A DNA stretch of 64,000 bases from assembly GCF_001194135.2 (NCBI RefSeq), contig NC_068993.1, positions 6,543,958-6,607,957 on the forward strand, written 5' to 3'. Positions 42 through 64,000 of the stretch are shown here, piece after piece (within the stretch, counting starts at the first letter, position 1; the number at the start of each line of letters is the position of its first letter). The position numbers were made by a program, and so were the translations under genes. Source of the stretch: Octopus bimaculoides (taxonomy: Eukaryota). The notes below the pieces were generated by a model. That model saw only the letters and a program-made list of their open reading frames with translations, did no database searches and was not told the DNA's origin.

Positions 42-690
42 GTATTATTTTGAATGCAACAACTGGTTAGCCTTTGACAAAGGCGATGGCTTGATTATCC
101 GAAAATTAAAACCAACAACTGGACAGCTGTTTGATCTCTTTGAGGCGACCAAAACCAGGATCTACAGATCCTTATTTGATGACCATCTCTATTTCTCGAT
201 AGTTAAACGACCTCGTGCCAGTAAATTCACACGTGTACAGAGACTGTCGTCTGTAACAGCAATACTTTATCTGTCTCTCGTCAGTAGCGCCATGTTTTTT
301 AAACCAGACGAGAAACCTTCTGGAAGGGTGATCCGCATTGGAAGTTTAGCAATTTCTTCAAAGGAGATTTTTGTCGGAATAATTGGTTCCATAATAATGA
401 TTGTACCGACGTCTATGATCATCTTTCTTTTCAAAACACGAAAGAGCAGAGGACAACAACCAAGAGGAGATGAAGAAAAGAAGGCATCAATTAAAGAGCG
501 GCTGAAAGGGTTTCAATTCCCATGGTGGACAGTATATATTGCGTATCTGATTGTGTTTGCATCGATAGGTGCTTCGGCATTTATTACATTTACTTACAGT
601 ATGAAATGGGGAAAAGAACTATCACTACGCTGGCTGCTCTCTGTGTTCGTCAATGTGTCTGGTTCTATATTATTTGTGCAACCTTTAAAG
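42..690 (+). CDS. PKD1L exon: PLAT C-terminus and TM2-TM5
   Basis: tacag|G acceptor; YYFECNNWLAFDKGDGLIIRKL...DDHLYFSIVKRPRASKFTRVQRL...VQPLK|gtcagt. Confidence 0.95.
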
Positions 691-2617
691 GTCAGTTGTC
701 CCTTTCAATTTTATTAAATTTATTCTCTATGAAATGTAATTTCCTATAACACTCACATATATGTTAGTGCATGCATGTAAGTATGTGTGCACGCATATGT
801 AAATATCTACACACACACACGCACACACATACACACATACACACACATGACAGAAGTAAATAGACACCCTGTAAAATATCGTTTTATGTTTATTCTAACT
901 TCTAAAGGTTTATATTTTTTTTTATTAATTGACATTTTTATGTTTCAGTTTCTATGTGTGACTGTTTAATCATTCCTGAAATACTGTAAATCTGTGTCTT
1001 TCTTTTGATGAAAGACTGTGTTTAGGAGAGACTTGGCTGCTATTTGTAGTAGCTCAAGTTACCTCAGAGATATCTGTGTTTATTTGTGTGTATGCACGCG
1101 CGCATGCATGTGTATGTGTGTGTGTTTTGTTGTGGTGAAAAACTATACTTTTTCTCAGAACATTTTGCACAATAACTTTTTAAATAATCAAATTATGAAA
1201 GTTACTCTGACTACTATGCATAAAATGCAAAATATTTTATTTTTTTCTAGATTAGGCAGGCATAATTCGTCCCTACTTTTCAATCTCAGTATTAAAGCTA
1301 TGCATAGTATTGTTGTAGTACACATGCTGTGTACATTCCTACAACAATATTTTAAAGGCAGAAGTAAATCTGCTTTCAACTCAGTCGTGTGCCTGTGTTT
1401 CGCTCATTTTTTGTGTGTTTTACTACATAAAGGTCACCAACTGGTGGCACGTGCCTGATATATATGTATTGTATAACGTTTATCAACAGATGTGACTTGG
1501 TGAAACCATGAGTGTAAGGTTAAGTAAATTGTTTCTCAATCATGATGTCTCAAGTTCAATCCCACTTGAGAATACCTGTCTCTAATCTGTGTGTGTGTGT
1601 GTGTATGCCTGTGGGTATGATTACCAATCATCTGAGAACCCTTCTTCCCCTTATTTCTTTCTAGGTTGTCTTCACGGCCATGTTACTCTCCTTTATCTTT
1701 AAGTCACCATCAACTGAGGAAGACAAGTACGAAACAGACCTCTGCAGCGATCGGTTTAATGATTTGTCACAGTTTCCTGGTAAATTTGGAAGAGTTTCTT
1801 TTCAAAACATCTTCTTTCTTCCTCTTTTTCTCTAATCACATGAAAGCGTTAACGACGGGCTAAGTAACGTAATGACAAGAAGAATTATCAATAACTATTA
1901 TTGATGGCAAAATGGTTAGCAGTATTTTGTTCGTCCTTATGTTCTGAGTTCAAATTCTACTGGGGTCCACTTTGCCTTTCATCCTTTCAGGGAAGTGCTT
2001 TTTACGTGTCACCGGCACAAGACTCTTTCAGACCAATCATTTTCGCCAGTGGGAGCAGCCTTAGTACTTCTGCTATGGAGTACAGGTCTTCTTGAGTACA
2101 GCAAGGCACCAAGTATCTCAGACCTTTGTCATCTCATCTGATAGGTTCAGCGTCTGGGGGGGTCATCCTTCAGTACTTTGTCCCATGTCTTCTGGGGTCT
2201 CCCTTTTCCACAAGAGAGATCAGCAGCTCAATAAAATAAATTACCAGTCATACACTGGGGGACAATGCTACCAGTTAACCCCCTCCCCTCGAAATTACTA
2301 AATCAAAAACCATTATTTTATTTTACTTCTTTTTCAGTTGTTCCAAAGGAATCCTTGAAAATCTGTCCCATGCCAAATTTGGCATCTGAAGATTGGCAGA
2401 AGAAGAAAGAAATCCTGCAACTCGATTATAAACTCTTCAATATGTTCCAGTCCCTTTTCTTCCGTTGTTTATATATTGTACTTTTGCTAATTCTTATTGC
2501 TAATGAATCGGTAAACAAATGTTTTCAGCAGAATAATTCTATTGAAAATATTTTCCACATCAAAAAATTCTCACAGGTAAATATATATATATATAATTAA
2601 ATGAATACCTGCATCAT

Positions 2618-2658
<41 letters not shown>

Positions 2659-4714
2659 CTAGCACCATCACCATAAGGGATATTAGACTGTCATTTCTAT
2701 CAGGTCAAGCAGATAAGGAGATTACAGGTAGGATCTCTCACTAGGTTGCTTTTTTTTTTTCTCATCTAAAATACACTTCCATTATATTCTTAACCATTTT
2801 TTTATAATTAGAAAGGTGGTATTGAATTGATGTGGGATTGGATAGAAAAATATGCTGTTCCAGGAATCTTCCCACTCACAGACAGTAATGGTAAAGAACT
2901 GAAACTGTACGACCAATATTTCCTGCCAGACAAAACCAACAGGCGTCTTGGAGGCATTCGTCTGAGACAGATAAGAATGGTAAAAGGTAAATATAATTTA
3001 CAAACAGTGATTATTCCATTTTGTTTCTTACCATTTTGCCCAAGAACCTGTTTCGATTATGCCTTGTAGCATTCAACTACATCTCTTTACATTCTGAGTT
3101 CAAATCCTTCCAAGGCTGGCTTTGTTCTTTATCCTCTTGGTTTCATCATCGTTTAACATCATGTTCCATACTGGCATGGAGTGAATAGTTTTGAGGGAAT
3201 CCTGTGGAACCAAGGAGTGCAACATGCTCCAATGTCTGCCTTAATATGTCTTCTATGAGTGGATACCCTTCTTAATGTCAACCAATTCGCAGAATGGACT
3301 GGGTGTTGTTTTTTTGTGCCACAAGAACTAGTGAGATTACTATGTAGCTTGCAAGGCTATGAACCACAAGAAAGACAACTTTATGCTAGGAGATAAGGAA
3401 CTATGCAGTTGAGGTGGGCCGGAAGTATAGGGTCAGTGATGTCACACGAACGGCCGAGGGGCCTTGCTGGAAGAGAAATGAGGCAGGTCATGTAAGCAGA
3501 AGCATGACTAACATGGGCCTCTTTTGCGTTGGGACTTTTGCTCGGGATGAATGTGGTGGCTGCATGAGTTGAGTGAGTTGGTAATAAGGTTCTGGTCAGA
3601 GTAGGGTTCCAATGGATATATCCCAGTTGGAAAGGATCAACATTACAAAAGAACCTGCTAGGTGAATTATGCCTTCTTCCCCCATACCATAAGCTATTTT
3701 GGCCCTCGTGCATTTTTCTCTCTCCCACCCCTTTCTGAATGATATGTCAACAAAAATAAGGAGTGGTATCAACGCCGTCATTACTTAATTACTTTGTGTG
3801 TTTCCAGTTCCATGTCACATGTCAAGAATAATCAAAATGTGCATTCCAAACTATTCTGCAGAACATGAAGATACAAAGGATTATCTACCAGGTAAACATC
3901 CATCATAATTATTGTCATCACTGTCATCTTCATCATCATCATCATCATCATCCCCATCAACATCATTTTTGTTTTACCGGTCACTTTTACATGCTCACAT
4001 GAGTTGGATGGAATTTGCAGAAGGAGATTTACTATACTTGGGTGCCCTTTCTGTCACCGACCCTCATATGTTTCCAAGCAAGTTAACTTTTCCTCGTGAC
4101 CACACATATTTTCATAGAAGTTTACAAATAAAGGACATCGGTTGTTTACAACTATCATGCAATAATAAGACAACAACAACAACAACAACACACACACACA
4201 CACATAGATACAAAGACATATACACATCCACATATGCTAGAGTTTTTTCAGTTTCTCTCTACCAAATCCACTTGCAAGGCTTTGGTTGGCCCAGGGCTAT
4301 AATACAAGAGACTTGACCAATGCATCATGCAATGAAACTGAACCTGAAATCATGTGGCTGGTAAGCAAACTTCTTAACCACAAGTGCCTTGCCCGCACCT
4401 ATATATACAGTGACCCGCAAAAGTTTACAACGCACAATCAAAAATCCAAATTTACATATATTGAGTCAATGCAGGTTAATGAAATTTCCACTGTTTATGA
4501 AATTGTTCGTAATAAATTCAATGCAACAATCAGAATTACATAATAATGAGCAGAAACTAAACTCAAGGCACTGCAGGAAGACCTGGAAGCATATAAAGTC
4601 CATGTGAGCAAGGATACAATATATGTTAACTTGAGCTTTTCCCTGTGTGTTTTAAACTTTTGCGAGTCACTGTAGTTATAGAAGTACAAGCTTAGCTGGA
4701 TATATGTGTATGTG

Positions 4715-4747
<33 letters not shown>

Positions 4748-6222
4748 GTATGTATGTAGTGTGTATGTATGTATGAATGTTGTGTTATGCAATGTGGTCT
4801 TAAAAAAATGTATAAACTGTCCAGAATTTGAAACCACATATACATGGTCATGAGTGGAAGCCTGTTACCACTAGACCATGACCCTTTTACATGTGCATTT
4901 CAGGAAATAATAAAATGATTTAATCATTGTTATAATTACTCTTCCTTAATGCAGGCTGGAAAATTGGTGCCAAGCAGAAAGAAGAGGATAAATATATAAC
5001 TGCTGCATTCAAATATACTTCTGAAGAAAAAGCTGGATATAGCTTCATTCATTATGGAATACAAGGAAGTTATAAAAGTGCTGGTTATATCATTGATATA
5101 AACGAGAGACACAAGAAAGCAAAATCATTGTTCGAGAAACTTCGTTTGAACACCTGGATAGACGAGCGTACCCGAGTGGTAACCATTGACATTAGCACAT
5201 ACAATGCTAATTCTGGGCTTTTCACATCAACTAAAATTGTGATTGAGAGATTGTCCTGTGGTAGAATGGAGCCATCTATTCTTTCACTCAGCTTCAAGTT
5301 CCATCCATTTGTTGATCCTCTGGATTACTTGGTGCTGCTGATAATTATCATCGTTGGAATTCTGTGTTTGATAACTTTGGCAGGAGTTGTCATAGCCATT
5401 AAGAAACGACGCATGCAAGCCCTGCGTGAATATCACACCCTCATCAATATGGCAACTGTAATCTCCATCCTAGTCATCCAGATTGGCTTCGGTTTGAGAA
5501 TTGACGCTCTTCTTCAAATTCAGGATAAATTGGTCAAGAATCCAGGTAAACAGTTTTAATTTTAATATATATGTTTTTAGTGCAATGTGGTGACAGAATC
5601 ATTAGCACACCAGGCAAAATGCTTAGTGGCATTTCGTCTGATTTCACATTTTGATTTCAAATTCCGCCAAGGTCAACTTTGCTTGTCGTCCTTTCAGGGT
5701 TGATCAAATAAGTACCGGTTGAACACTGGAGTTGATGTGAACGACTTTTCCCTCACCTGAAATTGCAGGCCTTGTGTGAAAATATGAAATTAAGGCATTC
5801 CTTTTTGTGAAAGAGCGTAGGCTTGAAACATCAAAAATTCTTCCATTTTTCCAGAGCGTCAAATTAATATATCTTGTTTGTTGCTCCCTTACCTGGCTCT
5901 GTTTTTTTTTGTATTTTGTTTTTGTACATTTTGAACCTTATGCATACACACACACACACACACACACACATACACACACAAACACACACACACACAAATA
6001 TCAGGTCATCCTATAAGTAATGTCCTAAATATCATATATGTAATTTCCATTGAATTTTACAATTTTCTAAAATGCCAAATGAGATTGATTTTTTCGTACA
6101 TAGACTTGCCTAACTTGCTTCTCCTTACAATCTACTCCTCTACCTGCTCAAATTCAAATCTCTTAAGTACTATGAAGTGTATTCTGCATGGAGAATACCT
6201 GTCTCTAATCTATCTGTCTATC

Positions 6223-6293
<71 letters not shown>

Positions 6294-6311
6294 AAATGTA
6301 AATATATATAA

Positions 6312-6348
<37 letters not shown>

Positions 6349-7571
6349 NNNNNNNNNNNNNNNNNNNNNNNNNNNNNNNNNNNNNNNNNNNNNNNNNNNN
6401 ATATATACATACATATATGTATGTATATATATATATATATATGTATATATATGTATATATATATATGCACATATATGTATATATATTACACTCTCTGAGT
6501 GGTTGGCGTTAGGAAGGGCATCCAGCTGTAGAAACTCTGCCAAATTTAGATTGGAGCCTGGTGTTGCCATCCGGTTTCACCAGTCCTCAGTCAAATCGTC
6601 CAACCCATGCTAGCATGGAAAGCGGACGTTAAACGATGATGATGATGATGATGATGATTCTGTATAGTTATTACATGATTTTATTATTTCAGATGCCTAT
6701 GTATCAGGGAACTTAATGGCATCCAGAGTGATGGTGTATTTTGCTGGTCTCTGTGCCTGTGTGGTAGTATTCGCCATCAAGCTATTACAACCACTTGCCT
6801 TGAATTACCACCTGTTCTTGATGAAGGCCAGTATCATGCTATCGCTGCCATCCATCGCATCATTCAGCGTCGTCCTTTTCTTCCTTATGACAGCTTTTGC
6901 AATCGGCATTCATATAACTTTCAATAACGTATCGATATATTTCATCGATTTGAAATCCACCTACCTGGCTCTCTTCCGCATTTTCCTTGCCATGGGCAAA
7001 TTCAAAGAGACTTTCGGTTTAGATAACATCATGTCGAACATGGTTTTCTTCATCTACACCTTGCTCGTGTCTATCATTCTGTTAAATGTATGCATTAGTA
7101 TTATCAACGATACGTTTAGCTTTGTCAAAAGCAGGATTAATTCTCTTGGATTTGAATACTGTTTTGATTTCAAACTCAACGAACATTTCTGGTATAGAAT
7201 GACCACTCTCTTTTACAAGAAGAAAATATCCAGTGAAGGTTATTATTATTATTATTATTTTCTTTTCTTTTTTGTTTATTCTTTTATTCTTTTATTTGTT
7301 TCAGTCATTTGACTGCGGCCATGCTCACAGTATAGGCGACTTGTCAGACTCAAATGGCTGAAGGCACATAGCCTCTCTACAACCGGAAGAAGAAATACAA
7401 ATCCAACTCGCCATTATGTATGTCTTCCTCTAGTTGTAGAGAGGTCATATGTCTTCAAACATTTGAGTCTGATGAGGCTGACGCTTTATATGTGCAAAAT
7501 CAATGGTCACTCTCTGATTGGCCACAGCATTTTAACTTCCTACAATGTATGTGTGTATATATATATGTGCA

Positions 7572-7637
<66 letters not shown>

Positions 7638-8744
7638 TGTGTGTGTGTGTGTATATATATATGTTCCTTTTTCTTCCTGGGAAAACGAAGCATCAGAATG
7701 CATGACCTGATGTCAATCCTGCTTCTCAGTTCAAGTATTTGAGCCAAGTTGATTCCAACATCTGGACCAACTTCGTGCAAGCATGAAGGCATGCTGACAA
7801 AACGCTGCTCCTCTAAATGGAAACCTTCCTGCTGTCATGGTATTGTAGCACAAAGCAAAGCAGGCCTTGCCTTCCACTCTAGAAAATATATAATGAATGA
7901 TGCCCAAGCAGTCAAGCAAACGGATTCCTTAACTCGTTCCTTTTGCCAAAAGGTTTGCAAAGTACTGGAAGGCCTCAAGAGATGGTCACATATTTTGTGG
8001 ACACATTCGTATCCATAGAACATGATAAACGCTTTATTTTACTGAATCCTCATTTGTTGTTCATGACAAGAGAATCCATCAAATATATTGGTGTTAGTAT
8101 ATGTGTATACGTTTCCATTATAATGTAATAATATTATTCTAGACATACATTTTTCTAAAACTTCATTTTCCTTTTTGTCTGCTTCAAGAGAAATATTTAC
8201 CAGTGAGAATGAATTCTCAGATAACAAAGAAAGTATTTCAAAAAGTAAGTTAACTTTTTCCCTGATTTTAATCCGATGTTTTATATTTTCTTTTCACAAA
8301 CTGGAATTAATTCTTACCAAAGTGTTTCATCTGGACTCTTACAATAGTAGAATTAATTCTTTATATTTAAACTGGCCATATCCAGTCCAAATATTCTACA
8401 TGTTTTATGTTGAAACTGGCCAGATCCAACCAGTCACACATAACCTACAATATTTACATTATTTACATTTGATGGATATTTGTCCTCATCTTGTTCATTG
8501 TTAACACAACATTTCAGCAGATATCCCTTCCAGCCTTCATCAGGTGTCTTGGGGAAATTTCGAACCTTCACTGGATGATACCTCAACTTCAATTCTCACC
8601 ATCCATACAGTGTAAAGAGAGGGATTGCTCAGTGCCTAAAACGTTGAGCAAAGAATATAAGTAGCGATTGTGATACACACCATGAAGAAATGATCAACTC
8701 AATAACAATCTGTTAAGCAACAACTACCCAAAATAATAATAATG

Positions 8745-8801
<57 letters not shown>

Positions 8802-11800
8802 TTGAAAAATACCTTAGGAAATGAGAACCTAGGTTCGAAATTTCCCCAAGACACCTGATGAAGGCTGGAAGGTATATCAGCCGAAACGTTGTGTTAACAA
8901 CAAAGAAGATGAGGACAAATATCTGTCAAATGTAANNNNNNNNNNNNNNNNNNNNNNNNNNNNNNNNNNNNNNNNNNNNNNNNNNNNNNNNNNNNNNNNN
9001 NNNNNNNNNNNNNNNNNNNNNNNNNNNNNNNNNNNNNNNNNNNNNNNNNNNNNNNNNNNNNNNNNNNNNNNNNNNNNNNNNNNNNNNNNNNNNNNNNNNN
9101 NNNNNNNNNNNNNNNNNNNNNNNNNNNNNNNNNNNNNNNNNNNNNNNNNNNNNNNNNNNNNNNNNNNNNNNNNNNNNNNNNNNNNNNNNNNNNNNNNNNN
9201 NNNNNNNNNNNNNNNNNNNNNNNNNNNNNNNNNNNNNNNNNNNNNNNNNNNNNNNNNNNNNNNNNNNNNNNNNCAAAGGTCTCGGTCAGTAGTCATCGCC
9301 TCGGTGAGGCCCAATGTACGAAGGTCTTGCCTCACCACCTCAGCCCAGGTCTTCCTGGGCCTACCTCTTCCACGGGTTCCCTCAACTGTTAGGGTGTGGC
9401 ACTTTTTCACACAGCTATCCTCATCCATTCTCACCACATGTCCATACCAGCGCAATCGTCTCTCTTGCACACCACAACTGATGCTTCTAATGTTCAGCTT
9501 TTCTCTCAAGATACTTACAGTCTGACGGGTATTCACATTGACATTACACATCCAACGGAGCATACTGGCTTCATTCCTTGCGAGCTTACGTATGTCCTCA
9601 AATTCCTCATCTCTTAAATATAGAACTATAACCTACAATGTCTGTCATTCTAAAAATAAACAATCACAGCTTCAAAATTTTGAAAGGATAAGATACTTCA
9701 TAAAGCATTACAATTGATAAATTAATCTGAATGCTAAAGAGTTAAGCCCTCACCAAAATATTTTATTTACCATCTTGGAGTAGAATAAATTCGCAGCAGA
9801 ATATTTTGATTGAAGTACAAATATTGTTGTCCTGTATTATATCATCACCACCACCCTGTGTTACATCATTGCCATCACCATCATCATCATCATCATCATC
9901 ACCACCATCACCACCATTACCACCACTACCAAGACCACCACCACCACCACCACCACCACCACCACCAATTCGTTATTTCTGGGAGTTTAGTGTTTAGTTT
10001 TCCTTCACTCACAAGATATCGGTGATGCCAATGCTACCTAATGTTCTCCTAATTTGACTAATGTTACTTCCTTTTTTCACAAACTTTCAGTTCGATCTTC
10101 TCGTTTGTGAGTCCATCAGTGACTTTGAAGAAATAAGTTGGATGCTGCTGAAGAAATACATAAATTGTTATCTGGATATGCATCTCAGGAAACCTGACTT
10201 TGAAAGCGTCCAGACCAAATTACACGGTGCCAGTGATGCTATGAAGCTTTTCCAGCCAGTTTTCACAGACCTGTGCCAGATAGGAAACCAATTGGAAGTT
10301 AAAAAGATCTGCAATGGAGGAACATCATGGACACTTTGGTAATAACAGGAACATTTAATACGATATAGATATTAAAAATTTGCTTAATTTTATTTTTGAC
10401 ATAGACATCATAAAAATGTATAAACTTCAAGAGAATGTTAAATAATTTAGTTTTGGAACAGTGGGTCTTGAAGCATTTACAGCTATAAATAATAGCATGT
10501 AAATATTAAGTTAAAAAGACACTTGCTTAGAAAAAGTTGAAGGCTGCCCATGGGATATGAACCTACATCTCCTGTAAATATGATAGGTGTTCTACCATTG
10601 AACCAAAGCAATTTTTGCCAATTTAAAAACTGAAGTTTTAACTCCAGGTCAGGCTTGACTAAGCAGACTTTGACAAGAAGAGTTCAGCTGTGACCACCCC
10701 ATCAGTGTTTTGTATATCTAAGCATCATAGGCATATAGAAGCAGTGAAGAAGCAAATATGGTAAACCGGTGCATGAAATACCTTATTATATTTACTATAT
10801 TTAATGGCATAAAAGAGTGGCATATTAGGTGCAACTTCCTTTTCAGCAATGTGTATTCTGGGAAAAACAGTTTGTAATGTATTAAAGTATGCATTGTTAC
10901 ATGTTCTGATCCACGGTTCACTTCCTGTGCTCTGCAATGCTTCATCAACCAAAAAGGGACAGAAGCTTCAGTGAAGGAGTTCTTCACCTCGAAGAACAAG
11001 AACTGGTATCAGCGTGGGAACAAAGAACTGGTAGAAAATCGGTTTCACATGGTGCAAAACGATGGCCTCTCTGTTGAATGCAAGGCAGCGTTTTTTGTAA
11101 CTTGATAAATAAGGTAAATAAGTTACCAAAATATTGATTTCAAATTTTAGCATAAAGCCAGCATTTTGTGGGGCGGGAATAAGTCAATTACATCGACCCC
11201 AGTGTTTAACTGGTACTCATTTCATCGACTCCGAAAAGAGGAAAGGCAAAGTTGACCTCGGTGGAATTTGAACTCAGAAAGTAAGGATGGATGAAATGCC
11301 ACGAAACATTTTGCCTGGTGTGCAAAACAATTCTGCCAACTTGCCGCCTTAACATGGCAAAACATTTGACTCAACACAATGATAAAGGCCCAACTTTGCA
11401 TATAGGATCCAAGATGATATTTTAAAAACCGTTTTGGGGCAGAAATTGCATTTTATATGCCTTCAAATATGGGAGTTTAATTTTTCATTTTTCTATGTTC
11501 AATTTCCATACCAGTAACAGTTCTGCTTTTTGTCTCTCTGGGGCTGATACAATGACTAACAACTATGTCAGTGAAGGAAGGAATTTGTTCCAATTAGTAG
11601 TCTTGAAACGGTATACAGAAAGTTTTATTTTTACATCCATAAATTATATATAATTTTTTCATTATTATCTGTCCTATATAATTCCTACTGTTACTAATTA
11701 AAAATTTTCTTTTAATTCTTTTTAAAATTCCAAAACAACAAACAAACGAAAAATGAACATAACTAATTAAACAATACATAAAATAAACAAACAAACATAT

Positions 11801-13822
11801 ACAAAAAAAAAAAAAACAGGTATTATTGGAAATATAAGGACCCAGTTCTGAAAGTATGCTGTAAATGCCACAATGAAGTTCCTGAAATATTATGTTATGA
11901 TGTGACTGATAAAAAATATCAGATGTTACCACAAATGCAACAATCCCAGTTTGTGGGTCCTGTCGTCTGGATTTGTCAACCAACAACCTGTAATGTAGAC
12001 CAGGTAAGGATCACTAAGTTAGTCTTACTCTGCAGGAGTCATCAGTTAAGCTTGTACAAAAAGGGGTTATTAATTTGGTCCAGTGATATTTTCTTGGTCA
12101 GAGACCAGTGATTAAAACACAAGTATGATTATATAGGGGTGGTCATAGCCGCGTGGTTAAGAAATTTGCTTCGTAACCATGTGGTTTTGAGTTCTCGCCC
12201 AATGTATGTATATGTATGTTCTCTCCCAATGTATGTATATGTAGTCTTTTATGCTTGTATATTTTACAGTCAACCTTAGAGATTACATCATTCTGTCATG
12301 AAACCCTTCACCAATATCACTGCTGTGAACTCATTGAAAGCAGTGATGGAATTAATTGGTCAAATTATGATGATGATGATGATATGATTGACTGCAATGA
12401 AGTGATGTCTCCTCATTTAGAAGAGGTATGAGAAACAGTTAACGATCTTTGTTTAGTAGATATTATGTGTATATATATACATGCTTGTGTATGTATATGC
12501 ATATGTATCTCTGTGTGTGCATATAGATATATGTTTATATATATATATTATATATATTTATATTATATATATATATATAATATATGCATTTTATATATAT
12601 ATATTTATATATATGTATATGTAATATATATAACTGTTATCTATCCCATTCAAATATTTAATAATAGCGTTTAATAATCTAATAATTTAGCTTTTACTCA
12701 ACCTTTGCTTGTTGCCACTCATTCCACAACACACACACACAATTCCTTCCCAGCCAGTAACTGAAAAAGCCTTCTGCCCAACCTACACCTCGCATACATC
12801 TCATACAAACTTCTTACATATCTATGCTGTAACCACAAATCTCTTGTTTTTCTGTTCCACATTGCATCACCTCTGATACTTCTGACACCTGTGCCGCCAC
12901 CACCACCACCATGGTTTTTATGGTGAACATCAACATCCTCAACAACAACACCAACAATAGCATAGTTACGAAGATGAGAAGTTGATAAGACAGCTACCCT
13001 GTTATATTGCTCTCACCAAGCGGATGAGAGCAGAAACCTGGCTGTTTCATGGCACAAAGCTGGTCTCGTCTTTGGAACCAAACCTCTCCATTATGATCCC
13101 ACTAGAAGCAAGTCTCTCTCAGAAGATCGTCCTAAGACTTAAAGTAAGATATATCTTCATCTCTTAGACTTGGATATGTATGTATGTGTGTATGCATGTA
13201 TATTTGAAAGCATGAATTTTGTGTGTGTGTGTGTGTGTGTTTGTGTGTGTGTGAGTACGTGTGCATGAAAGCTTGAAAGTGTGACTGAAAGCTTGGGGAG
13301 GGGAAGTGGCAGGACTAGTAGCAAAATATTTTCATGTAATACAATACAGGTTTTTCTAAGGATGTTGGCAGTACTTGTCAGCACAATCTTTTGGATTCCT
13401 CTGAGCCATGGTTCTCCTGGGATATAATCTACGTTTCTGATATCCCTTTCTTATCATACCTATTATTATTATTATCATCATCATCATCATCATTATTGTC
13501 ATTGTCATCGTTGTTTTTGTTGTTGTTGTTATTATTATTAGTCGCATAAAATTAATACTGTGACCATGTTTTCTTCTAGTTAAACCCTTACCAACCGATA
13601 CCTCAGTTGTTCCTCACCTTCAACATAGATTTACAGCAACCAATCACCGTCCATTTTTCCACTACAAGCAATACTACATTTCCAGGTAAGTGAACCAACA
13701 CAAAGAAACCCATCTCTTCAACCAATGCCACAGAAGTATTGTTCTCATTACTACTGCTGCTCTCATCTTGTTGTTACTGTTGCTGTTATTCTTACCAACA
13801 TCAACTTGTCTTGTTGGTTTGT

Positions 13823-13857
<35 letters not shown>

Positions 13858-15646
13858 TGGTGGTTGTCTACTCCTTAAACAGAGTTTGACCACCTCCTGC
13901 ATCTACACCTTAGCCCTTTCATGGCGTCTGATGTGGCTTTTTAAACCAGACAGTGTTTTGAAAAAACACCCACACAGATTGCACCTCTGATTTGCACTAC
14001 CAATACCTGCAAGTAAGTTCTGCTCATTGTGGATCCTAACATGTCTTTTAAGACCCCCATTGGATTTGCAAACCCTCTGGCACACACCACATTCAAACGT
14101 GTGCACAGACATATAATCAGAATAGCTGGGTGAGGTTTGTTTTCCATGGGTTCGCAGGTGAGATTTGAGGCCAGCCAAGGACAGACATGGTATATATACA
14201 TCTGTGTGTGCACGTGCATGGAATTTTGACTGGCAACTGTTGGCTCTCGTTGGAGCTCATCAATACAATGAAACTCAAGACCAACTATTTGGTCTATGTT
14301 TAGTAAAAACATTTAGGAACTAAACACGATCGGGTTTCTTTCCTTCTCTTATTTTTTCTTTCTTCCTTTCTCCCTTAACAGTGGAGAAGAGGTGTGATGA
14401 TGATGATTGTATATATATATTTCTTCTTTCTTTTCCTGTGCCTTAAATGCATGTGTGCGGTTTGTGTGGTAGTGATAGTGGTGGTGGTGCATGTGTGAGT
14501 GAAAACAAAACCCACTTAGAGCTGAGACAAGTTGTCAAGTGTCTTAATAAAGGGCTGGTACCAGTAAAAAGCTTTATCTGCATGGAATCTTGCACCCCAC
14601 ATCTGTATAAAATCTTGATACTATAAACTAAACTTTCTGTTTCTAGATTTGCAGCTGTATTCCAAGAACCGTTCCTCACAATGGACTGAGGAAGCCATTC
14701 AGATATCCCAAAACCAAGGAATTAGCTTTAAGATAAAGCCACCCTCAAAGTAAGATCTTGTTTGTCTTTTATTATTATTTTTATTATTACTGTGTTTATT
14801 GTTAAGGCAAACTGGCAGAATAATTACTGCACCGGAGAAAATATTTTGCACCATTTCATCCGGCTCTTTATGTCCAAAATTCAAATTCCACTTGATGTTG
14901 ATTTTGCCCTTCATTCTTTCAGAGCTGGTGAAATAAGTACCAGTTCAGTTTTGGGGCTATATGTAATCGACTTACCTCTACCCTCAAAATTTGTTGGCCT
15001 TAGGCCAAAAATAAGGAATTATCACTGTGAGTGTTAATCCTAAAAGAGTGGATTTATGTAATTAGAAATCAAAAATAAAAGCTGGGACAAATGTACTTCC
15101 ACCATGCAGCTTGCCCAAGGGCGTTTATACATCCATATTTGTTAACGGTTATTTTTAATACTTTTCTCGCTGGATTGCATGTTCGCTTCTGTTTTTTCCC
15201 ATCTGTGATTTTATTTTTGATCTTCTATATATATGAAGATATTTCCTCCGTCTGGTTGCTTTTCTTTCTAGAAAACAAGATGTTACATTGTGGAACTCTT
15301 ATTCTAATAAGTTGTGTCTCTTTATCAACCAATGAGATACATCCTGAAGCGGCTGTTGAGTGTCTTACTCATGAGGGATCGATGTGGCGAAACAATTGTC
15401 ATGATTAATAATGAATTCTTGTATATTCCATCTTCTGTCTTTCATTTGTCATATATATATATGTGTGTGTGTGTGTGGTGCATGTATGTATAATATTTAT
15501 GAATACGATACTTATATCTGATGCATGCATGCTTTCAATTATCATTTTATTTTATTTCAATCCAGATGTGAAACTGTATATATGTTGAAGCCATCACACA
15601 TACTGTGGGTGAGTATGCATATATTTACACACACACACAGATACTG

Positions 15647-15677
<31 letters not shown>

Positions 15678-18600
15678 TACACACGTACTGAGAGAAACAA
15701 TATTTCTTGTTATCATTATTATCATTATTATTATAATAATCATTATTATCATTGTTGTTGTTGTTAAGGCAGCGAGCTTGCATAATCGTTAGCATGATGA
15801 GCAAAATGATTCAAGGCATTTCATCTGTACTTTTTCTCTGAGTTTAAATTCCACCAAGGTTGACTTTGCCTTTCATCTTTTTGGGATAAGTAACAGTTAC
15901 GCACTGGGGTCGATGTAATCGATTAGCCCCTCCCCCCAAATTTCAGGCCTTATGCCTATAGTAGAAAGGATTATTATCATTATCATCATCATCATCATCA
16001 TTATTATTATTATTATTATTAAGGTGGCGAGCTGGCAGAATCATTAGCATGCTGGACAAAATGCTTAGTAGTATTTCACTCATCGCTATGTTCTGAGTTC
16101 AAATTCCACCAAGAACGACTTTGCCTTCTATCCTTTCGGGGGTTGATAAATTAAGTACCAGTGAAACACTGGGGCTGATGTAACTGTCTAGTCTCCTCCC
16201 TGCAAATTTCAAGCCTCGTGCCTTTAGTAGAAAAGAATATTATTATTATTATTATTTCATTTCTAGGACTGGCAGAAACAGCTGCAATGTATCAAAGGTA
16301 AGATGGCATTGATTCTAAGAATATAATCTATTTTTAGAATTTATCAGATACTCAAGACTCCAGACATTAATCTCCCACCATCCCCCTCTCTAGTGTATGA
16401 GTGTATGTGTGATAAAGAGATTGTGTGTGAATGTGTGTGTGTGTTAGGGCAAAGATCTGATAACTAGTGACCTACAACTAGTAACCAGGTGGACTAGAAC
16501 AATCTTTTCATGGCTGCGAATTTGGTGAGCAAACCCTAAAACCCTACAAAGTCTGCTTGATGAGAGGGTGGTTTCAGGGGTCAGTCTGCAGGATGAGAAA
16601 CAAAACCCGATTGGTCAGCCAATAATATGTGTGTGCGTGAATGTGTGTATAAAAGCATGTGGCTTAGGGATTAGATTATTCGGCTCATGATTGTAAGGTT
16701 ATGAGTTCGATTCCTGGAGACACATTGTGTCCTTGAGCAAGACACTTTATTTCACATTGCTTTACTCCACTCAACTGGCAAAAATGAGTAGTCCTCTGCC
16801 CTGTGTTTCAAAGGGCCAGCCGTGTCACATTTTGTATCACAATGACTCTCCCTGAGAACTGTATCGAGGGTATACGTGTCTATGGAGTGCTCAGCCACGT
16901 TCTCATTCACGAACAGTCTGTTTTGTTGATTGGATCAACTGGAACACTTGTCGTAAGCGACAGAGTGCCAGTCAGATATACATATATTTATTTCCTGCCA
17001 TCTCTGAAGAGTATCATGTGTGTTAGTTAACTGCCCTGTAACCTAACATCTAGTGTGAAACCAATTGGCAAGTTTGGCTGAAATGGATCTATAATACAGT
17101 ATATTTTGATTTATATATACATACATACATACATATATAAATATATATATATATATATCCACACACATGTAGATATATGTATGTGTTTTTGTGAGTGAAC
17201 AAGCATGTGTGCATGTACATTTTTGTGTGTATGAAGATGTACATGGGAGAAGAATACCTGAATATATAAGCATGAATTTGTACCATTTTCTACTTTCCAA
17301 GATCCTGTTAACAAAGATTTCCTTCTGCAAGTATCAACTGCCATTGGAAACAAATGGCAACTTCTGGCACAAGAACTGAACGTCTCTGGGCTGGTTATGA
17401 AACGGATAAAGACAACTGCCAGTGATAAAGCTCCTCATGTGGCCTGTTTCAACATGTTAATTGCATGGCATAACTCTCTACCTGTTACAAGCGATAAGGT
17501 CAGTTATTATAGCTATTATTGTTTAACCATGGGCTAGCTTCCTTTGAGTAGATCTTTCATCAAAAGCATTCCACCACAGACATATACATGCATAAACACG
17601 CATACACACACTCACACATGTATAACTTAAACCTTTAGCACACATAAGTGCATAATGGTGCCATACGAACTTCCCTCTATAATTGCAGGTGCACTGGGTC
17701 GCATTGAAAGGGGACATAACTTATACGGTAACAATGCAGCTACAGTATGCTAAAGGTCAAAGCCATTTTTAACTCTTTTGGTACCAATATGTCTGAGATG
17801 GTCTCTGGTTCTTATATAAAATCTCTCATTTTTAAATAAGTTTTCAGATCCACTTTTTTTTAAAGTTGGCATGGATTGAATGAGGAATTCTTGTAGTGGT
17901 ATGCTATGGTAAAATATATTCATGGACATAAATATCAACTGCTTAGGAAATTCATTGGCAGGAGCTCCAGGGCACCCCAATCATATCAACAAGCTTGTCA
18001 ACTGTTCAGTGACGGTCCTCCAAGATCAGTTCATGCATTTTTGTGAGGTTTTCATTCGTTCGGGATGTCGACGGTCGCCCTGAATGAGGTTGGTCTTCAA
18101 GCGACAAGTGACCATTCCTAAAGTATGAAAACCACTTGTGAACTTATGTTTTGCTCATGGCAGCATTGTTGTAAGCTGTTTGAAGCACGACAGCTGTTTT
18201 CTCCAGCAGAAAACAGAACTTTACAGAAGCAGGCTGTTCCTTTGTTTCAGCCGTCGCAAAAATCAATGAACAAAGGAGAAGCACCACTAAACAAAGATGC
18301 ACCACATGGCAGTAGGACTACATCCAATGCTGCCAGAGGGCAGACTGATGCCTGAGGGTCACATCAACTGGCTTCTAAAGGCAGAAGCCTGAACTACAAC
18401 AGTTTTATCCCACAGAGAATGTTTCCAATTACTTTTGTGTAACCCCTTGTACACTGAAACTGTTTAAAAAAAAAAATTCCAACATTTCAGGTAAAACCCC
18501 TCACTTCAGCTCTCTCAGTCCTTGGCTACAAACAACTTGCTGAACAATTAAACACAACAGCAGAAGAGTACAGTCACAAGTGTCAAACAGCTCTTTCTGG

Positions 18601-20719
18601 TAAACATTCAGGAAAATTTTTCTAATATTTATAATTAATTAGATTTTGTTAATAACTAGCAGCTATCTATGCAGGGCCTTGCTTTGTTTCTCTCACACTT
18701 TAACCCTTCATTCCATTGCATAAAATCGCCACCTTCTTTAATGTAACCCCATTCAGGGATCTAAGTTTTGCAAGCTTCACAGCAACTTCACTGGTGCTGG
18801 TGCCATGAAAAATGCTCAGTACTTGTAAAGTGGTTGGTGCTAAGAAGGGCAGGCACCCAGCTGTAGAACCCATGCCAAAGCAGACTTTAAACCAATCAGA
18901 ACCTGTCAGAAAATTCAACCCATGGCAACTGGAAACATAGGCATCAAATAATTATGATGATGGAATAAATATCAATCATGTGCTTAAGCTTAGAGATTAG
19001 CTATCACTTGTGCGAGAAAGTGGCATGGTATCACGTACCAGTCTTGCTAAAACACTGGTGTTTATGTACATTATTTACATTTGGTGGATATTTGTCCTCA
19101 TCTGGTTTGTTGTTAACACAACATTTCGGCTGACATACCCTCCAGCCTTCATCAGGTGTCTTGGGGAAATTTCGAACCTGGGTTCTCATTCCTAAGGTAT
19201 TTTTCTTCTCACCTGAATAATAATATCGAAAAATACCTTAGAAATGAGAACTTTCCCCAAGACACCTGATGAAGGCTGGAGGGTATATCAGCCGAAACGT
19301 GTTAACAACAAACAAGATGAGGACAAATAGCCATCAAATGAACATAATTCCTCATCTCTAAATATAGAACCAGTGTTTATGTTGTCAGAAGCACACAGAT
19401 ACCATTTTGTTGTCTCTCCTATTCTTTGGCCCAATAGAACATCGTGGAAATGACAGATGGAGAGCAATGGGCATGCAACTTTTTACAAAAGTATGGTATC
19501 TATCAATCATAGGTGCCATATTTTCCTACAAAATTTGTCCTTTTAAAAATGCAATAACCCCCTTATTGAAATCTCAGAACTACAAAATAATGTCTAAATT
19601 ATTTAAAACAATGTAAATAAATAAGCTTTACATTTGATAGAAAACTTTGAATGCTAAAGGGTTAACAAAATTTTGTTCGAGAAGGAAATCAATATTTTAA
19701 TTGAATGCATAAATTCCATGGTTTTTTTGCAGATTGTGAGAAAAAGAAATTCTTTGATTTCCTTTGCCGTTCTAAAGCTCTGGCAATCAGATGGCAGGAA
19801 CTGGCCACATATCTGGGTATTTCAGAAGAAACACAGGAAAACATTGACAAACGGGTTGATCTATCTCTTCGAGAAAAGTGCTTTTCTGTCTTGGAATGTT
19901 GGCAAAAATATGATCAAGAACTACTCCAGAAATCTCTCACAAAACTCAGTCACCAGTTCCTTGCTTGTAAGTATTCAAAATCTCGAGTTCCAATGCATTT
20001 TCATAGGGTTTATGCTTTCAGTTGCTGTCATTTGCTACAAACACGTATATCTGTGAGTTCCCTCTGTGTTTACATTTGGAATAAAAATGGTAAGAACTTT
20101 CAGGTCTCCCTTGAGAATGAATTTGTTACAGAAACTATGCGGAAGCCCATCACACATACAGAGAGACATCTATCTATTATTTGATATTACCATCATTCAT
20201 ATTGAATGTTTTCTATATTTTAACTAATATAGGCGCAGGAGTGGCTGTGTGGTAAGTAGCTTGCTTACCAACCACATGGTTCCAGTTTCAGTCCCACTGC
20301 GTGGCACCTTGGGCAAGTGTCTTCTACTATAGCCTTGGGCCGACCAAAGCCTTGTGAGTGAATTTCGTAGACGGAAACTGAAAGAAGCCCGTCATATATA
20401 TATATATATGTATGTGTGTTTGCGTGTCTGTGTTTGTCCCCCCACCATTGCTTGACAACCGATGGTGGTGTGTTTACATCCCCGTAACGTTCGGCAAAAG
20501 AGACCGATAGCATAAGTACTAGGCTTCCANNNNNNNNNNAAAAAAAAAAAAAAAAAAAAAAAAAAGAGTATATCTAATTTTCATCATTTGATCATTAATA
20601 ACTTTTATATTTCTAAACTGATTTCAGGTAGAGTTCCTGCTTTCAAACAGAAAACTGAAGCAACACCACGACCACAACCACCACCACGACCAACAAAAGT
20701 CACCTTTGATATTCCATAA
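42..20719 (+). CDS. Polycystin-1-like (PKD1L/REJ family) channel with C-terminal ZU5-ZU5-death-death tail; 5' part lies outside the window
   Basis: Exons 42-690, 1665-1779, 2338-2576, 2812-2986, 3808-3891, 4955-5545, 6693-7238, 8189-8244, 10091-10338, 11820-12003, 12270-12425, 12961-13143, 13580-13685, 14647-14749, 15566-15608, 16267-16297, 17302-17498, 18491-18599, 19733-19966, 20628-20719. All are GT-AG with compatible phases, no internal stop, TAA at 20717-20719. PKD motifs: YYFECNNWLAFDKGDG (PLAT end), FTRVQRLS, FVQPLKV, LRQIR, WIDERTRVVTIDISTYNAN, LLNVCISIINDTF. Confidence 0.9.
1665..1779 (+). CDS. PKD1L exon (end of TM5, loop)
   Basis: ctag|VVFTAMLLSFIFKSPSTEEDKYETDLCSDRFNDLSQFP|gtaaat; phase 0 to 1. 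Confidence 0.85.
2338..2576 (+). CDS. PKD1L exon (S1 helix)
   Basis: ttttcag|VPKESLK...FRCLYIVLLLILIAN...KKFSQ|gtaaat. Confidence 0.9.
2812..2986 (+). CDS. PKD1L exon (TOP/polycystin domain)
   Basis: ttag|KGGIELMWDWIEKYAVPGIF...RRLGGIRLRQIRMVK|gtaaat. Confidence 0.92.
3808..3891 (+). CDS. PKD1L exon (TOP domain)
   Basis: ccag|PCHMSRIIKMCIPNYSAEHEDTKDYLP|gtaaac; phase 1 to 1. Confidence 0.88.
4955..5545 (+). CDS. PKD1L exon (TOP domain, S2, S3)
   Basis: gcag|GWKIG...AFKYTSEEKAG...LRLNTWIDERTRVVTIDISTYNANSGLF...KNP|gtaaac. Confidence 0.95.
6487..6658 (+). mobile_element. RTE LINE 3' UTR fragment ending in (GAT)n, young family
   Basis: Near-identical copies at about 30835-31010(-), 43845-44008(+), 57388-57545(+). 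Confidence 0.8.
6693..7238 (+). CDS. PKD1L exon (S4, S5, pore, S6)
   Basis: tttcag|DAYVSGNLMASRVMVYF...STYLALFRIFLAMGKF...LLNVCISIINDTFSFVK...KKKISSE|gttatt. Confidence 0.93.
7331..7490. mobile_element. Foldback MITE-like hairpin with TATA ends
   Basis: tcagactcaaatggctgaaggcacatagcctctctacaac pairs with gttgtagagaggtcatatgtcttcaaacatttgagtctga. Confidence 0.6.
7700..8020 (+). mobile_element. Degenerate LINE 3' end with eroded C2H2 motifs
   Basis: QSKAGLAFHSRK and FCQKVCKVLEGLKR resemble the zinc-finger tail at 13903-14178. Confidence 0.4.
8189..8244 (+). CDS. PKD1L cytoplasmic-tail exon
   Basis: ttcaag|EKYLPVRMNSQITKKVFQK|gtaagt; this acceptor gives the phase 1 to 0 bridge into 10091 (an AG at 8189-8190 would give another frame). 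Confidence 0.65.
8452..9627. mobile_element. Penelope-like inverted-arm retroelement with 12-bp target-site duplication
   Basis: Inverted arms containing ctgatgaagg...ccgaaacg; TSD ataacctacaat at 8440-8451 and 9628-9639. Confidence 0.6.
9274..9597 (-). mobile_element. RTE-clade LINE, reverse-transcriptase C-terminal fragment
   Basis: RRLRWYGHVVRMDEDSCVKKC...GRGRPRKTWAEVVRQDL; runs into an N gap. Confidence 0.9.
10091..10338 (+). CDS. PKD1L tail exon (helical linker, start of ZU5-A)
   Basis: ctttcag|FDLLVCESISDFEE...VKKICNGGTSWTL(W)|gtaata; phase 0 to 2. Confidence 0.75.
10542..10612 (-). pseudogene. Degenerate tRNA-like sequence (tRNA pseudogene or SINE head)
   Basis: D stem gttc/gaac around TGG, T-loop ggttcatatccc, about 71 nt, several stem mismatches. 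Confidence 0.4.
10962..11150 (+). mobile_element. Mariner transposase C-terminal remnant
   Basis: EASVKEFFTSKNKNWYQRGNKELVENRFHMVQNDG resembles the mariner C-terminus (FF.SK...WY.RGI..L..RW......DG.YF). Confidence 0.75.
11820..12003 (+). CDS. PKD1L tail exon (ZU5-A)
   Basis: aaaacag|YYWKYKDPVLKV...LPQMQQSQFVGPVVWICQPTTCNVDQ|gtaagg; phase 2 to 0. Confidence 0.75.
12270..12425 (+). CDS. PKD1L tail exon (ZU5-A C-half)
   Basis: tttacag|STLEITSFCH...ELIESSDGINWSNY...PHLEE|gtatga. Confidence 0.78.
12961..13143 (+). CDS. PKD1L tail exon (ZU5-A/ZU5-B junction)
   Basis: aatag|HSYEDEKLIRQLPCYIALTKRMRAETWLFHGTKLVSSLEPNLSIMIPLEASLSQKIVLRLK|gtaaga; exact acceptor uncertain. Confidence 0.75.
13580..13685 (+). 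CDS. PKD1L tail exon (ZU5-B)
   Basis: ttctag|LNPYQPIPQLFLTFNIDLQQPITVHFSTTSNTTFP|gtaagt. Confidence 0.8.
13856..14300 (-). mobile_element. 5'-truncated LINE 3' end with three tandem C2H2 zinc fingers
   Basis: SLAGLKSHLRTH (first finger frameshifted), CGVCQRVCKSNGGLKRHVRIH, CNLCGCFFKTLSGLKSHIRRH; short 3' UTR ending in accaccacc and a (TA)n tract. Confidence 0.65.
14647..14749 (+). CDS. PKD1L tail exon (ZU5-B)
   Basis: ttctag|DLQLYSKNRSSQWTEEAIQISQNQGISFKIKPPS|gtaaga; phase 1 to 2. Confidence 0.8.
15566..15608 (+). CDS. PKD1L tail micro-exon
   Basis: tccag|(K)CETVYMLKPSHILW|gtgagt; open only with phase-2 entry, which is the phase supplied by the previous exon. Confidence 0.75.
16021..16237 (+). 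mobile_element. SINE family B
   Basis: gagctggcagaa...ctgagttcaaattcc...ccttc.atcctttcgggg...aagtaccag. Other copies at about 5590-5790(+), 11155-11352(-), 15765-15970(+), 32298-32510(-), 38378-38584(-), 43262-43480(-), 53645-53850(+). Confidence 0.85.
16267..16297 (+). CDS. PKD1L tail micro-exon
   Basis: ttctag|DWQKQLQCIK|gtaaga; phase 0 to 1. Confidence 0.72.
16650..16975 (+). mobile_element. tRNA-derived SINE family C
   Basis: gagttcgattcc...ccttgagcaagacactttatttcac. Other copies at about 25282-25615(+), 35838-36115(+), 36290-36545(-), 53190-53505(-), 63685-63915(+). Confidence 0.8.
17302..17498 (+). CDS. PKD1L tail exon: death domain 1, helices 1-4
   Basis: ttccaag|DPVNKDFLLQVSTAIGNKWQLLAQELNVSGLVMKRIKTTASDKAPHVACFNMLIAWHNSLPVTSDK|gtcagt; not in the ORF track. 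Confidence 0.88.
17943..18410 (-). mobile_element. Mariner transposase N-terminal (HTH) pseudogene fragment
   Basis: KEQPASVKFCFLLEKTAVVLQTAY...HKWFSYFRNGHLSLEDQPHSGRPSTS...LILEDR, with in-frame stops. Confidence 0.85.
18491..18599 (+). CDS. PKD1L tail exon: death domain 1, helices 5-6 and linker
   Basis: tttcag|VKPLTSALSVLGYKQLAEQLNTTAEEYSHKCQTALS|gtaaac. Confidence 0.86.
19068..19370. mobile_element. Penelope-like inverted-arm element, second copy
   Basis: About 130-bp inverted arms around a short spacer; flanking direct repeat gtgtttatgt at 19058-19067 and 19373-19382. Confidence 0.6.
19733..19966 (+). CDS. PKD1L tail exon: death domain 2
   Basis: ttgcag|DCEKKKFFDFLCRSKALAIRWQELATYLGISEETQENIDKRVDLSLREKCFSVLECWQKYDQELLQKSLTKLSHQFLA|gtaagt. 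Confidence 0.88.
20231..20528 (+). mobile_element. tRNA-derived SINE family A
   Basis: A-box tggctgtgtggtaag, B-box-like gttcagtccc. Other copies at about 49926-50290(+), 59464-59835(+), 40905-41062(+), 37015-37392(-), 40120-40468(-), 44990-45252(-), 63057-63175(+). Confidence 0.85.
20628..20719 (+). CDS. PKD1L terminal exon (Pro-rich tail, stop)
   Basis: tttcag|(C)RVPAFKQKTEATPRPQPPPRPTKVTFDIP* followed by a second TAA. Confidence 0.8.
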
Positions 20720-22152: not shown

Positions 22153-22363
22153 TTAACTGTCGCTGTCATCATCTGACCATTTGCTTACAAACATATTTGA
22201 AGAGTCTGTCAAAGCATTGTCATCTTCTGATTCACTTTCCATGCCTTCATCGTTTTCATCACCATCAGTCGAACCCTTAGATTTAGGGATCTCCTCAGCC
22301 CTTTTCCGCTTCAAGTGGCTTTGTTTTAGCAGGTACTGCATGGTGAATTCATTGTGTTCACAA
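22153..22363 (-). CDS. PWP2: PWP2 last exon (acidic tail, stop)
   Basis: CEHNEFTMQYL...DDDSDS*. Confidence 0.92.
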
Positions 22364-29463: not shown

Positions 29464-29518
<55 letters not shown>

Positions 29519-63700: not shown

Positions 63701-64000
63701 TTAGAGGTATTCGGCTCAGGATCGTAAAGTCGTGAGCCGAAAACCGGGTTCTCGTTGTTCCAGTCCATCAGCTGGCAAAAATGAGTTGGACCTAAAGGCC
63801 AGCCTTGTCATACCTCATGTCACGTTGAATCTCCCTGAAGACTACGTTAAGGGTACACGTGTCTGTGGAACGCTCAGCCACTTCCGGTTTTACATAGACT
63901 TACATTATCTCCCTAGACAAATGCTCCCTACTCAATTACATCCATGGTTCAAGACCGCACTGCATCCACCTGGCTAAGAAACACTATCTCCCCTCATATA

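Follow-up and report, generated by a model that had tools for sequence, protein, structure and literature searches.

Polycystin exons and tail exons at the locus

The stretch of Octopus bimaculoides DNA analysed here (the window; 64,000 nt of contig NC_068993.1, positions 6,543,958 to 6,607,957 of the forward strand) carries a gene that encodes a polycystin-1-like membrane protein, with a PLAT domain, a multi-pass transmembrane (TM) bundle, a Polycystin/TOP domain and a six-helix PKD channel domain. As judged from genomic comparison, the reading frame of this gene probably continues into a long tail with tandem death domains, so that the product would be a fusion of a polycystin-1-like channel and death domains. 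The orthologous locus of Octopus vulgaris (OX597826.1, 29.40-29.49 Mb, sequences L001 and L002), which belongs to a gap-free chromosome assembly, was used as reference. The window, which is AT-rich and contains seven N runs over 64 kb, aligns over its whole length with this locus at ca. 85-92% identity, introns included, and the neutral divergence between the two is ca. 9%. The only close database relative of the polycystin exons is an O. vulgaris protein, CAI9731770.1 (P0001, 1133 aa), named 'Polycystin domain-containing protein'.

A first-pass annotation, made from the DNA letters, had proposed a polycystin-1-like channel, and the Pfam profiles for PLAT, Polycystin_dom and PKD_channel all found their match. 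PKD_channel (PF08016) scored 58.8 bits against a cut-off of 22.4 (profile positions 3-223 of 225), the Polycystin/TOP domain (PF20519), located between helices S1 and S2, 115.3 bits (positions 8-197 of 199), and PLAT 59.8 bits (positions 1-108 of 117). The PLAT match made use of two O. vulgaris exons located upstream of the window together with the orthologue of the 42-690 exon, just the last ca. 25 residues of the domain falling inside the window. A PLAT/LH2 domain after the first TM helix separates PKD1-like from PKD2-like proteins; the PLAT match therefore makes this gene polycystin-1-like rather than polycystin-2-like, and the membrane part belongs to the former group. The extracellular REJ/GPS region lies outside the window; in O. 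vulgaris, model P0001, itself incomplete, gave no REJ/GPS match at E <= 0.1.

The gene starts upstream of the window. The complete in-window model comprises 20 GT-AG exons with a single open frame of 1357 aa to the stop (Table 1). Regarding the channel part, exons 42-690, 2812-2986, 4955-5545 and 6693-7238 form one open frame, and exons 1665-1779, 2338-2510 and 3808-3891 were added through the alignment with the O. vulgaris protein, because the Polycystin domain would otherwise be incomplete; with 2338-2510 included, the Polycystin_dom match extends to the positions given above. The exon that carries S3 to S6 ends in an AAG|GT donor and passes one base on to the next exon. It is intact in O. 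vulgaris though skipped by model P0001, and skipping its 546 nt, as in that model, preserves the frame.

For the tail that follows S6, the earlier proposal of 13 GT-AG exons in one stop-free frame of ca. 580 aa was recovered in an independent rebuild, in which the exons were chosen by their splice sites and their conservation in O. vulgaris (13 exons, 1742 nt, 580 aa). The chain runs from 8189 to 20719, all exons being bordered by AG and GT and all phases matching, with the stop at 20717-20719. It encodes a linker of ca. 100 residues, predicted to be helical, two beta-rich modules (ca. 130-150 residues) and two tandem death domains. In the linker, no similarity to PKD2-type tails or to EF-hands was found; a single-sequence AlphaFold2 model of the 10091-10338 exon was helical, with low confidence (predicted local distance difference test, pLDDT, 49). 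Since polycystin C-termini are cytoplasmic, the tail would be placed on the cytoplasmic side of the membrane.

The first-pass annotation had also counted two death domains. The first of them is clear, matching the Pfam Death profile (PF00531) with 29.5 bits against a cut-off of 22.6 over positions 8-83 of 86, and because only the splice of 17498 to 18491 completes this profile, the match gives independent support for the 17498|18491 junction. The second one, at 22.5 bits (E = 1.2e-4, positions 10-59 of 86), stays just 0.1 below the gathering score. Five PDB sequences matched the tail weakly, all of them death domains (THOC1, FADD and TNFR1), those on death domain 2 being FADD (E = 0.27) and TNFR1 (E = 0.67-1.1).

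Three assembly gaps lie within the gene, every one of them intronic in the exon model. For gap 6349-6400, the distance between the flanks is ca. 187 bp in O. vulgaris versus 308 in the window, and since the PKD_channel profile gives one unbroken match over the 5545|6693 junction, this gap hides no exon. Gap 8936-9273 lies inside a window-specific insertion with repeat copies (ca. 8490-9600, in the intron between tail exons 1 and 2; a related copy is found at 19000-19370), where the ca. 20 bp that separate the flanks of window positions 8935 and 9601 in O. vulgaris stand against 665 bp in the window. Gap 20530-20539 is in the last intron, and the compared O. vulgaris DNA ends just short of it. 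An O. vulgaris model of 160 aa extends beyond L002 and so implies a further exon of the size of 20628-20719; this model fits a direct join of 19966 to the last exon (ca. 30 codons) within one residue.

Table 1. Exons of the in-window gene model and copies of a dispersed repeat
Feature	Position	Strand	Content	Support
Channel exon	42-690	+	last PLAT strands, then TM helices of the polycystin-1-like N-terminal TM bundle	open frame, AG/GT; substitutions per codon position 6/11/22 versus O. vulgaris
Channel exon, 38 aa	1665-1779	+		tblastn to P0001 residues 653-690; AG/GT, in frame
Channel exon	2338-2510	+	S1 helix and start of Polycystin (TOP) domain	tblastn to P0001
Channel exon	2812-2986	+	Polycystin domain	Pfam and tblastn to P0001
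Channel exon, 28 aa	3808-3891	+	Polycystin domain	tblastn to P0001 residues 807-835; AG/GT, in frame
Channel exon	4955-5545	+	end of Polycystin domain and S2	Pfam; substitutions per codon position 8/9/20
Channel exon	6693-7238	+	S3-S6 and PKD_channel pore region	PKD_channel profile match
Tail exon 1, channel-tail junction	8189-8244	+	18-aa linker KYLPVRMNSQITKKVFQK	used in same frame by P0001; AG/GT conserved
Tail exon 2, 82 aa	10091-10338	+	predicted helical; last residues NGGTSWTLW open first ZU5-like module	present in P0001
Tail exon 3, 61 aa	11820-12003	+	first ZU5-like module	AG/GT conserved; +3 nt in-frame indel in O. vulgaris
Tail exon 4, 52 aa	12270-12425	+	end of first ZU5-like module; acidic run	used by P0004; AG/GT conserved
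Tail exon 5, 61 aa	12961-13143	+	start of second ZU5-like module (HGTKLVSSLEPNLSIMIPLEA)	acceptor 12961 conserved; weak ZU5 matches in expected register
Tail exon 6, 35 aa	13580-13685	+	second ZU5-like module, PITVHFSTTS (HFS motif)	AG/GT conserved
Tail exon 7, 34 aa	14647-14749	+	second ZU5-like module (LQLYSKNRSSQWTEE...)	103/103 nt identical in O. vulgaris
Tail micro-exon 8, 14 aa	15566-15608	+		strong splice sites; 41/43 nt identical in O. vulgaris
Tail micro-exon 9, 10 aa	16267-16297	+		31/31 nt identical in O. vulgaris; splice sites kept, upstream flank diverged
Tail exon 10	17302-17498	+	first two-thirds of death domain 1	Pfam Death; divergence 2.5%
Tail exon 11	18491-18599	+	last third of death domain 1	Death profile match spans 17498|18491
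Tail exon 12	19733-19966	+	death domain 2	Pfam Death; divergence 3.8%, no indels
Last coding exon, 30 aa and stop	20628-20719	+	proline-rich	in frame, AG acceptor; outside compared O. vulgaris DNA
SINE-like repeat copies	53216-53494, 36395-36505	-
SINE-like repeat copies	35850-35911, 25289-25382, 63690-63881			several further copies in L001 and L002

Beyond the gene, a convergent neighbour on the minus strand (22150-42000) shows WD40 repeats (58.9 and 38.9 bits) and a Utp12 domain (37.9 bits), and resembles a PWP2/UTP-type gene of the small-subunit processome. Its 3' end lies ca. 1.4 kb from the polycystin stop codon, so that the polycystin gene must end where the model ends.

Constraint on the tail and its probable continuity with the channel

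All 12 alignable tail exons keep their AG/GT borders in O. vulgaris, where they form an open frame of 552 aa that is ca. 94% identical. The ratio of non-synonymous to synonymous substitution rates (dN/dS, Nei-Gojobori) is 0.24 for the tail, with 35 synonymous changes in 334 sites and 35 non-synonymous changes in 1312 sites. The channel exons have 0.21, and intronic decoy open reading frames reach 0.64. The synonymous excess of the tail has a binomial P of 3e-8 with respect to the site proportions and of ca. 1e-4 with respect to the decoy proportion. Neither tail nor channel contains a stop in O. vulgaris, where the decoys contain 29. In the tail exons there are two indels in 1650 nt, both in frame (+3 and +6), as compared to 95 events in 8687 aligned nt of introns, 129 in 10.3 kb of decoy frames and none in the channel exons tested; the intron rate predicts 18 events in the tail exons, two or fewer having a Poisson P of 3e-6. 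Among the parts of the tail, the beta-rich block is the most constrained (dN/dS 0.15), followed by the linker exons (0.30) and the death domains (0.35). Single exons of the beta-rich block illustrate this, 12270-12425 differing from O. vulgaris by the in-frame indel of 6 nt, four synonymous and two non-synonymous changes, and 13580-13685 by three synonymous changes and one non-synonymous change with no indels. It is established, therefore, that the tail exons and their frame are constrained coding sequence under purifying selection, and not a chance chain.

Whether channel and tail are joined in a single mRNA is a separate matter. From the genomic comparison, a single mRNA seems fairly probable, and one gene, in which a polycystin-1-like channel continues into a constrained tail with tandem death domains, is the best explanation as a whole, for which we would claim somewhat better than an even chance. 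The order of channel and tail is collinear in the gap-free O. vulgaris chromosome assembly, and the arrangement is therefore not a scaffolding artefact. The main rival is a set of two or three same-strand neighbours, in which the channel gene would end after exon 6693-7238 or after exon 10091-10338, and a separate gene with a promoter of its own would begin at or upstream of 11820 and encode a cytosolic adaptor with the beta-rich modules and the two death domains, the in-frame 10338|11820 junction being coincidental. This alternative we consider doubtful.

For O. vulgaris, the annotation was made with EVidenceModeler as a consensus of RNA, protein and ab initio evidence (PMC10700109), and it divides the locus into three consecutive models on the same strand. 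The first one, CAI9731770.1, is the sole direct link between channel and tail: the polycystin exons are spliced in it to the 8189 and 10091 exons, in the same frame as in our chain, and it ends after the 10091 exon because a TAA overlaps the 10338 donor. It omits the 546-nt S3-S6 exon, the orthologue of 42-690 and a PLAT exon (L001, ca. 52075-52239), all of which are intact in the O. vulgaris genome. The second one, CAI9731769.1 (P0004, 110 aa), starts at an internal Met at ca. 11922 in the 11820 exon and then uses the 12270 exon; it shares the 14647 acceptor but reads that exon in the wrong frame. The third one, the model of 160 aa mentioned above, has a faint Death match and starts at a Met located 152 nt into the first death-domain exon. 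Because both downstream models start at internal Mets in the middle of an exon, one of them truncating a death domain, they are clearly fragments; their exon boundaries agree independently with the chain.

Several points weigh against continuity between channel and tail. Besides the division of the locus into three models, the weakest junction of the chain, 10338|11820, at which a poly-A stretch takes the place of the pyrimidine tract in the acceptor (pyrimidines at 4 of 22 positions), is exactly where the annotation breaks. The exon at the channel-tail junction, 8189-8244, shows two changes versus O. vulgaris, both non-synonymous, and is thus without measurable constraint of its own; it also contains a Met. 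The last 44 nt of exon 10091-10338 bear three changes, again all non-synonymous, a junction would be phase-compatible by chance about once in three, and proteins with ZU5 and death domains but without membrane parts are common.

On the other hand, the downstream models give no evidence of separate promoters, and in the exons in which they start both the frame and the acceptor are conserved upstream of the internal Mets. In particular, the frame of exon 11820-12003 is open upstream of the Met up to a conserved CAG acceptor, and its sole indel is in frame. An acceptor that is validated by the continuity of death domain 1, that of 18491, is likewise A-rich (8 of 22 pyrimidines). Upstream of the disputed junction, exon 10091-10338 has a TG|GTAATA donor, and over its first 51 nt, which precede any Met, it does not differ from O. 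vulgaris. Inspection of 10339-11819 did not reveal any candidate first exon with a Met, the open frames in it resembling, by eye, a mobile-element zinc-finger relic. Moreover, the best ZU5-like alignment, described below, begins in the 10091 exon and continues into those of 11820 and 12270, crossing the 10338|11820 and 12003|12270 junctions.

Two observations can be added on the introns of this region. The zinc-finger-like motif (CLVCKTILPTCRLNMAKHLTQH) is found in an open frame at 11285-11422, on the plus strand of the 10338-11820 intron; this frame resembles a relic of a mobile element or of a BED-type finger, the region being conserved in O. vulgaris as the remainder of the intron is. The intron right after exon 8189-8244 (region 8160-8489) shows 96% identity over 245 nt, versus ca. 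87-92% elsewhere, a pattern typical of regulated exons, which suggests that this exon may be alternatively spliced.

Beta-rich modules and rejected exons

Two ZU5 domains had been proposed for the beta-rich part of the tail. At the level of Pfam this proposal failed, since the ZU5 profile (PF00791) was unmatched even at E <= 10, with the full tail or with either module alone as query. A profile was then built from PDB-derived sequences of ankyrin-1/2/3, UNC5B and ZO-1. With hhalign, it aligned weakly with tail residues ca. 130-210 (P = 0.04) and ca. 245-280 (P = 0.08), with a probability of ca. 1%, and these scores were equalled by 4 and 5 of 120 shuffles, respectively (P of 0.03-0.04 for each module); the 12270-12425 exon was put on ZU5 columns up to ca. 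105. With hmmsearch, filters off, the score was 4.4 bits, equalled by 11 of 2000 shuffles (P of ca. 0.005 for the whole region).

In spite of the low scores, the matches in both modules follow the order and register of ZU5: GG; a strand ending in IP; LP...SP.V.C.P; PV...PH(F/C); and L.L.S..G..W.E. In a joint alignment, the first module shows the GG, a strand preceding the conserved P, LP...GPVVWICQP as compared to LSPSVTCGP, LEITSFCH as compared to VLTVPHCA, and ELIESSDGINW as compared to VLRSENGSVW. In the second module, the tripeptide HFS (in PITVHFSTTS, window 13640-13660, tail residues ca. 297-303) is identical in both octopus species, and was placed by eye at the PH(F/C) strand of ZU5, where MAFFT did not align it. 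It is at this strand that PIDD1 and FIIND proteins cleave themselves.

From these motifs, it is likely that the beta-rich modules adopt ZU5-like folds, and the second of them could be either ZU5 or UPA. It is also possible, with rather less probability, that the beta-rich region has another fold or is partly disordered, the protein being then a polycystin with a death-domain tail that lacks an autoinhibitory module of the ZU5-UPA type. Besides the failure of the Pfam profile and the low hhalign probability, the two modules show no detectable resemblance to each other, an AlphaFold2 model of fragment P0004 reached a pLDDT of 38, and the resemblance to ZU5 is weak as such, with shuffle P values of ca. 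0.005-0.04 at best. Against the one-gene explanation as a whole, no homologue of exon 12961-13143 was found among 1.84 billion representative proteins, the sole match, to a 12-fold repeat in a Tudor-domain protein, being judged spurious. A word-indexed protein search with a 422-aa composite tail query gave no match either, but this negative is unsound, as the search missed P0001, which has an 83-residue stretch ca. 90% identical to the query. Against a different fold, sequences vary greatly even among true ZU5 domains, ankyrins scoring only 22-31 bits with a profile of UNC5B and ZO-1; the expected order and register are found in both modules, with the shuffle statistics given above; the location directly N-terminal of death domains is the classic context of ZU5; and no other part of the tail is as constrained as this block (dN/dS 0.15, as given above).

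A number of candidate exons were rejected during the rebuild. The most tempting one, 16814-16869/16952, which would encode a beta-like peptide, is inside a dispersed repeat that resembles a short interspersed nuclear element (SINE) and has copies on both strands. This repeat (16660-16990) has a tRNA-like GGTTCGATTCC box, and the open frame within it (16814-16952), flanked by good splice sites, is deceptive. The candidate is 14-16% diverged from O. vulgaris, with a deletion of 15 nt and 13 non-synonymous versus 2 synonymous changes. That species has also lost the donor of the 16814-16952 version. Exons 14923-14962/15026 have frame-breaking insertions and a stop in O. vulgaris, and exons 15272/15280-15383 fall in a region unaligned to it; one join among these candidates creates a stop. 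At 13021 the O. vulgaris sequence reads AA, and the acceptor was therefore set at 12961.

Agreement of phase carries little weight by itself, since a naive chainer based on splice sites and codon bias also gave a stop-free GT-AG chain through junk exons. This result, the absence of database homologues for the tail exons and the fate of the tempting 16814-16952 and 14923-15026 frames, which proved to be repeat or unconstrained sequence, might suggest that the whole tail consists of open frames strung together by chance, or that it is what remains of a decaying pseudogene in the introns or downstream sequence of the channel gene. This reading is refuted for practical purposes by the dN/dS of the tail and its synonymous excess, by the lack of stops and frameshifts in both species despite their neutral divergence, by the conservation of all splice sites, by two micro-exons that are identical or nearly so amid diverged flanks, and by a Death profile that is completed only upon splicing.

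Known systems and possible signalling by the tail

The known members of the polycystin-1-like group (PKD1, PKD1L1-3 and PKDREJ; TRPP1 group) share with the octopus gene the PLAT domain, the multi-pass TM bundle, the Polycystin/TOP domain and the C-terminal PKD channel. Their C-terminal tail is short and contains a coiled coil or a G-protein-activating segment, whereas the octopus gene appears to add ca. 580 residues with two death domains. In layout, the tail resembles the ZU5-UPA-death-domain supramodule of UNC5A-D, ankyrins and PIDD1, since the ZU5-like motif order is found directly N-terminal to a death domain and, as in UNC5, beta-rich modules and death domain would sit on the cytoplasmic side of a membrane receptor; the likeness is one of resemblance, and membership is not claimed. 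Unlike those proteins, the octopus tail has no significant ZU5 match and contains tandem death domains instead of one, and its membrane part is a polycystin channel rather than an immunoglobulin/thrombospondin-type receptor, ankyrin repeats or leucine-rich repeats. As in the death receptors TNFR1 and Fas, a membrane protein would carry a cytoplasmic death domain, and the weak matches of death domain 2 include FADD and TNFR1, but the membrane and extracellular architecture is unrelated. With the autoproteolytic ZU5/FIIND proteins (PIDD1, NLRP1, CARD8 and UNC5CL) the tail shares the HFS tripeptide, its placement having been made by eye and the cleavage being putative.

In the literature searched we found no paper that combines a polycystin with ZU5 or death domains, and the word 'death' is absent from the main text of a 2026 survey of cephalopod TRP channels. 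The combination of a polycystin channel with tandem death domains is provisionally taken as new, its novelty being judged from the literature and from one exhaustively searched exon.

By analogy with the supramodules of UNC5B, ankyrin and PIDD1, the ZU5-like modules might hold the death domains closed. The tandem death domains would then be freed when the receptor-channel changes its conformation, or when the second module cleaves itself at its conserved HFS motif; they could nucleate homotypic death-fold assemblies with cytosolic adaptors, and a sensory or mechanical polycystin signal would thereby be converted into an adaptor-based signal. The coupling of the tail to caspases or NF-kB, or to spectrin, as the first-pass annotation had put forward, would likewise be drawn from such analogies. 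In its complete form, i.e. a polycystin-1-like receptor-channel in which tandem death domains are combined with a ZU5 module that cleaves itself as in PIDD, and whose activation releases or exposes a death-fold platform, this mechanism would be a hard-wired natural link between polycystin sensing and signalling of the death-domain (caspase/NF-kB) type, conserved at least within Octopus; it is speculative and we hold it to be improbable.

In any case, the current O. vulgaris models of the locus are fragmentary, CAI9731770.1 being incomplete and CAI9731769.1 frame-shifted, and need repair. If channel and tail do form one protein, it would represent a new class of death-domain membrane receptor, as well as a case of exon shuffling that has added adaptor modules to a sensory channel in cephalopods. 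Signalling by polycystin-1-type tails is a long-standing question, and a fusion to death domains would supply a concrete output pathway for it in one lineage.

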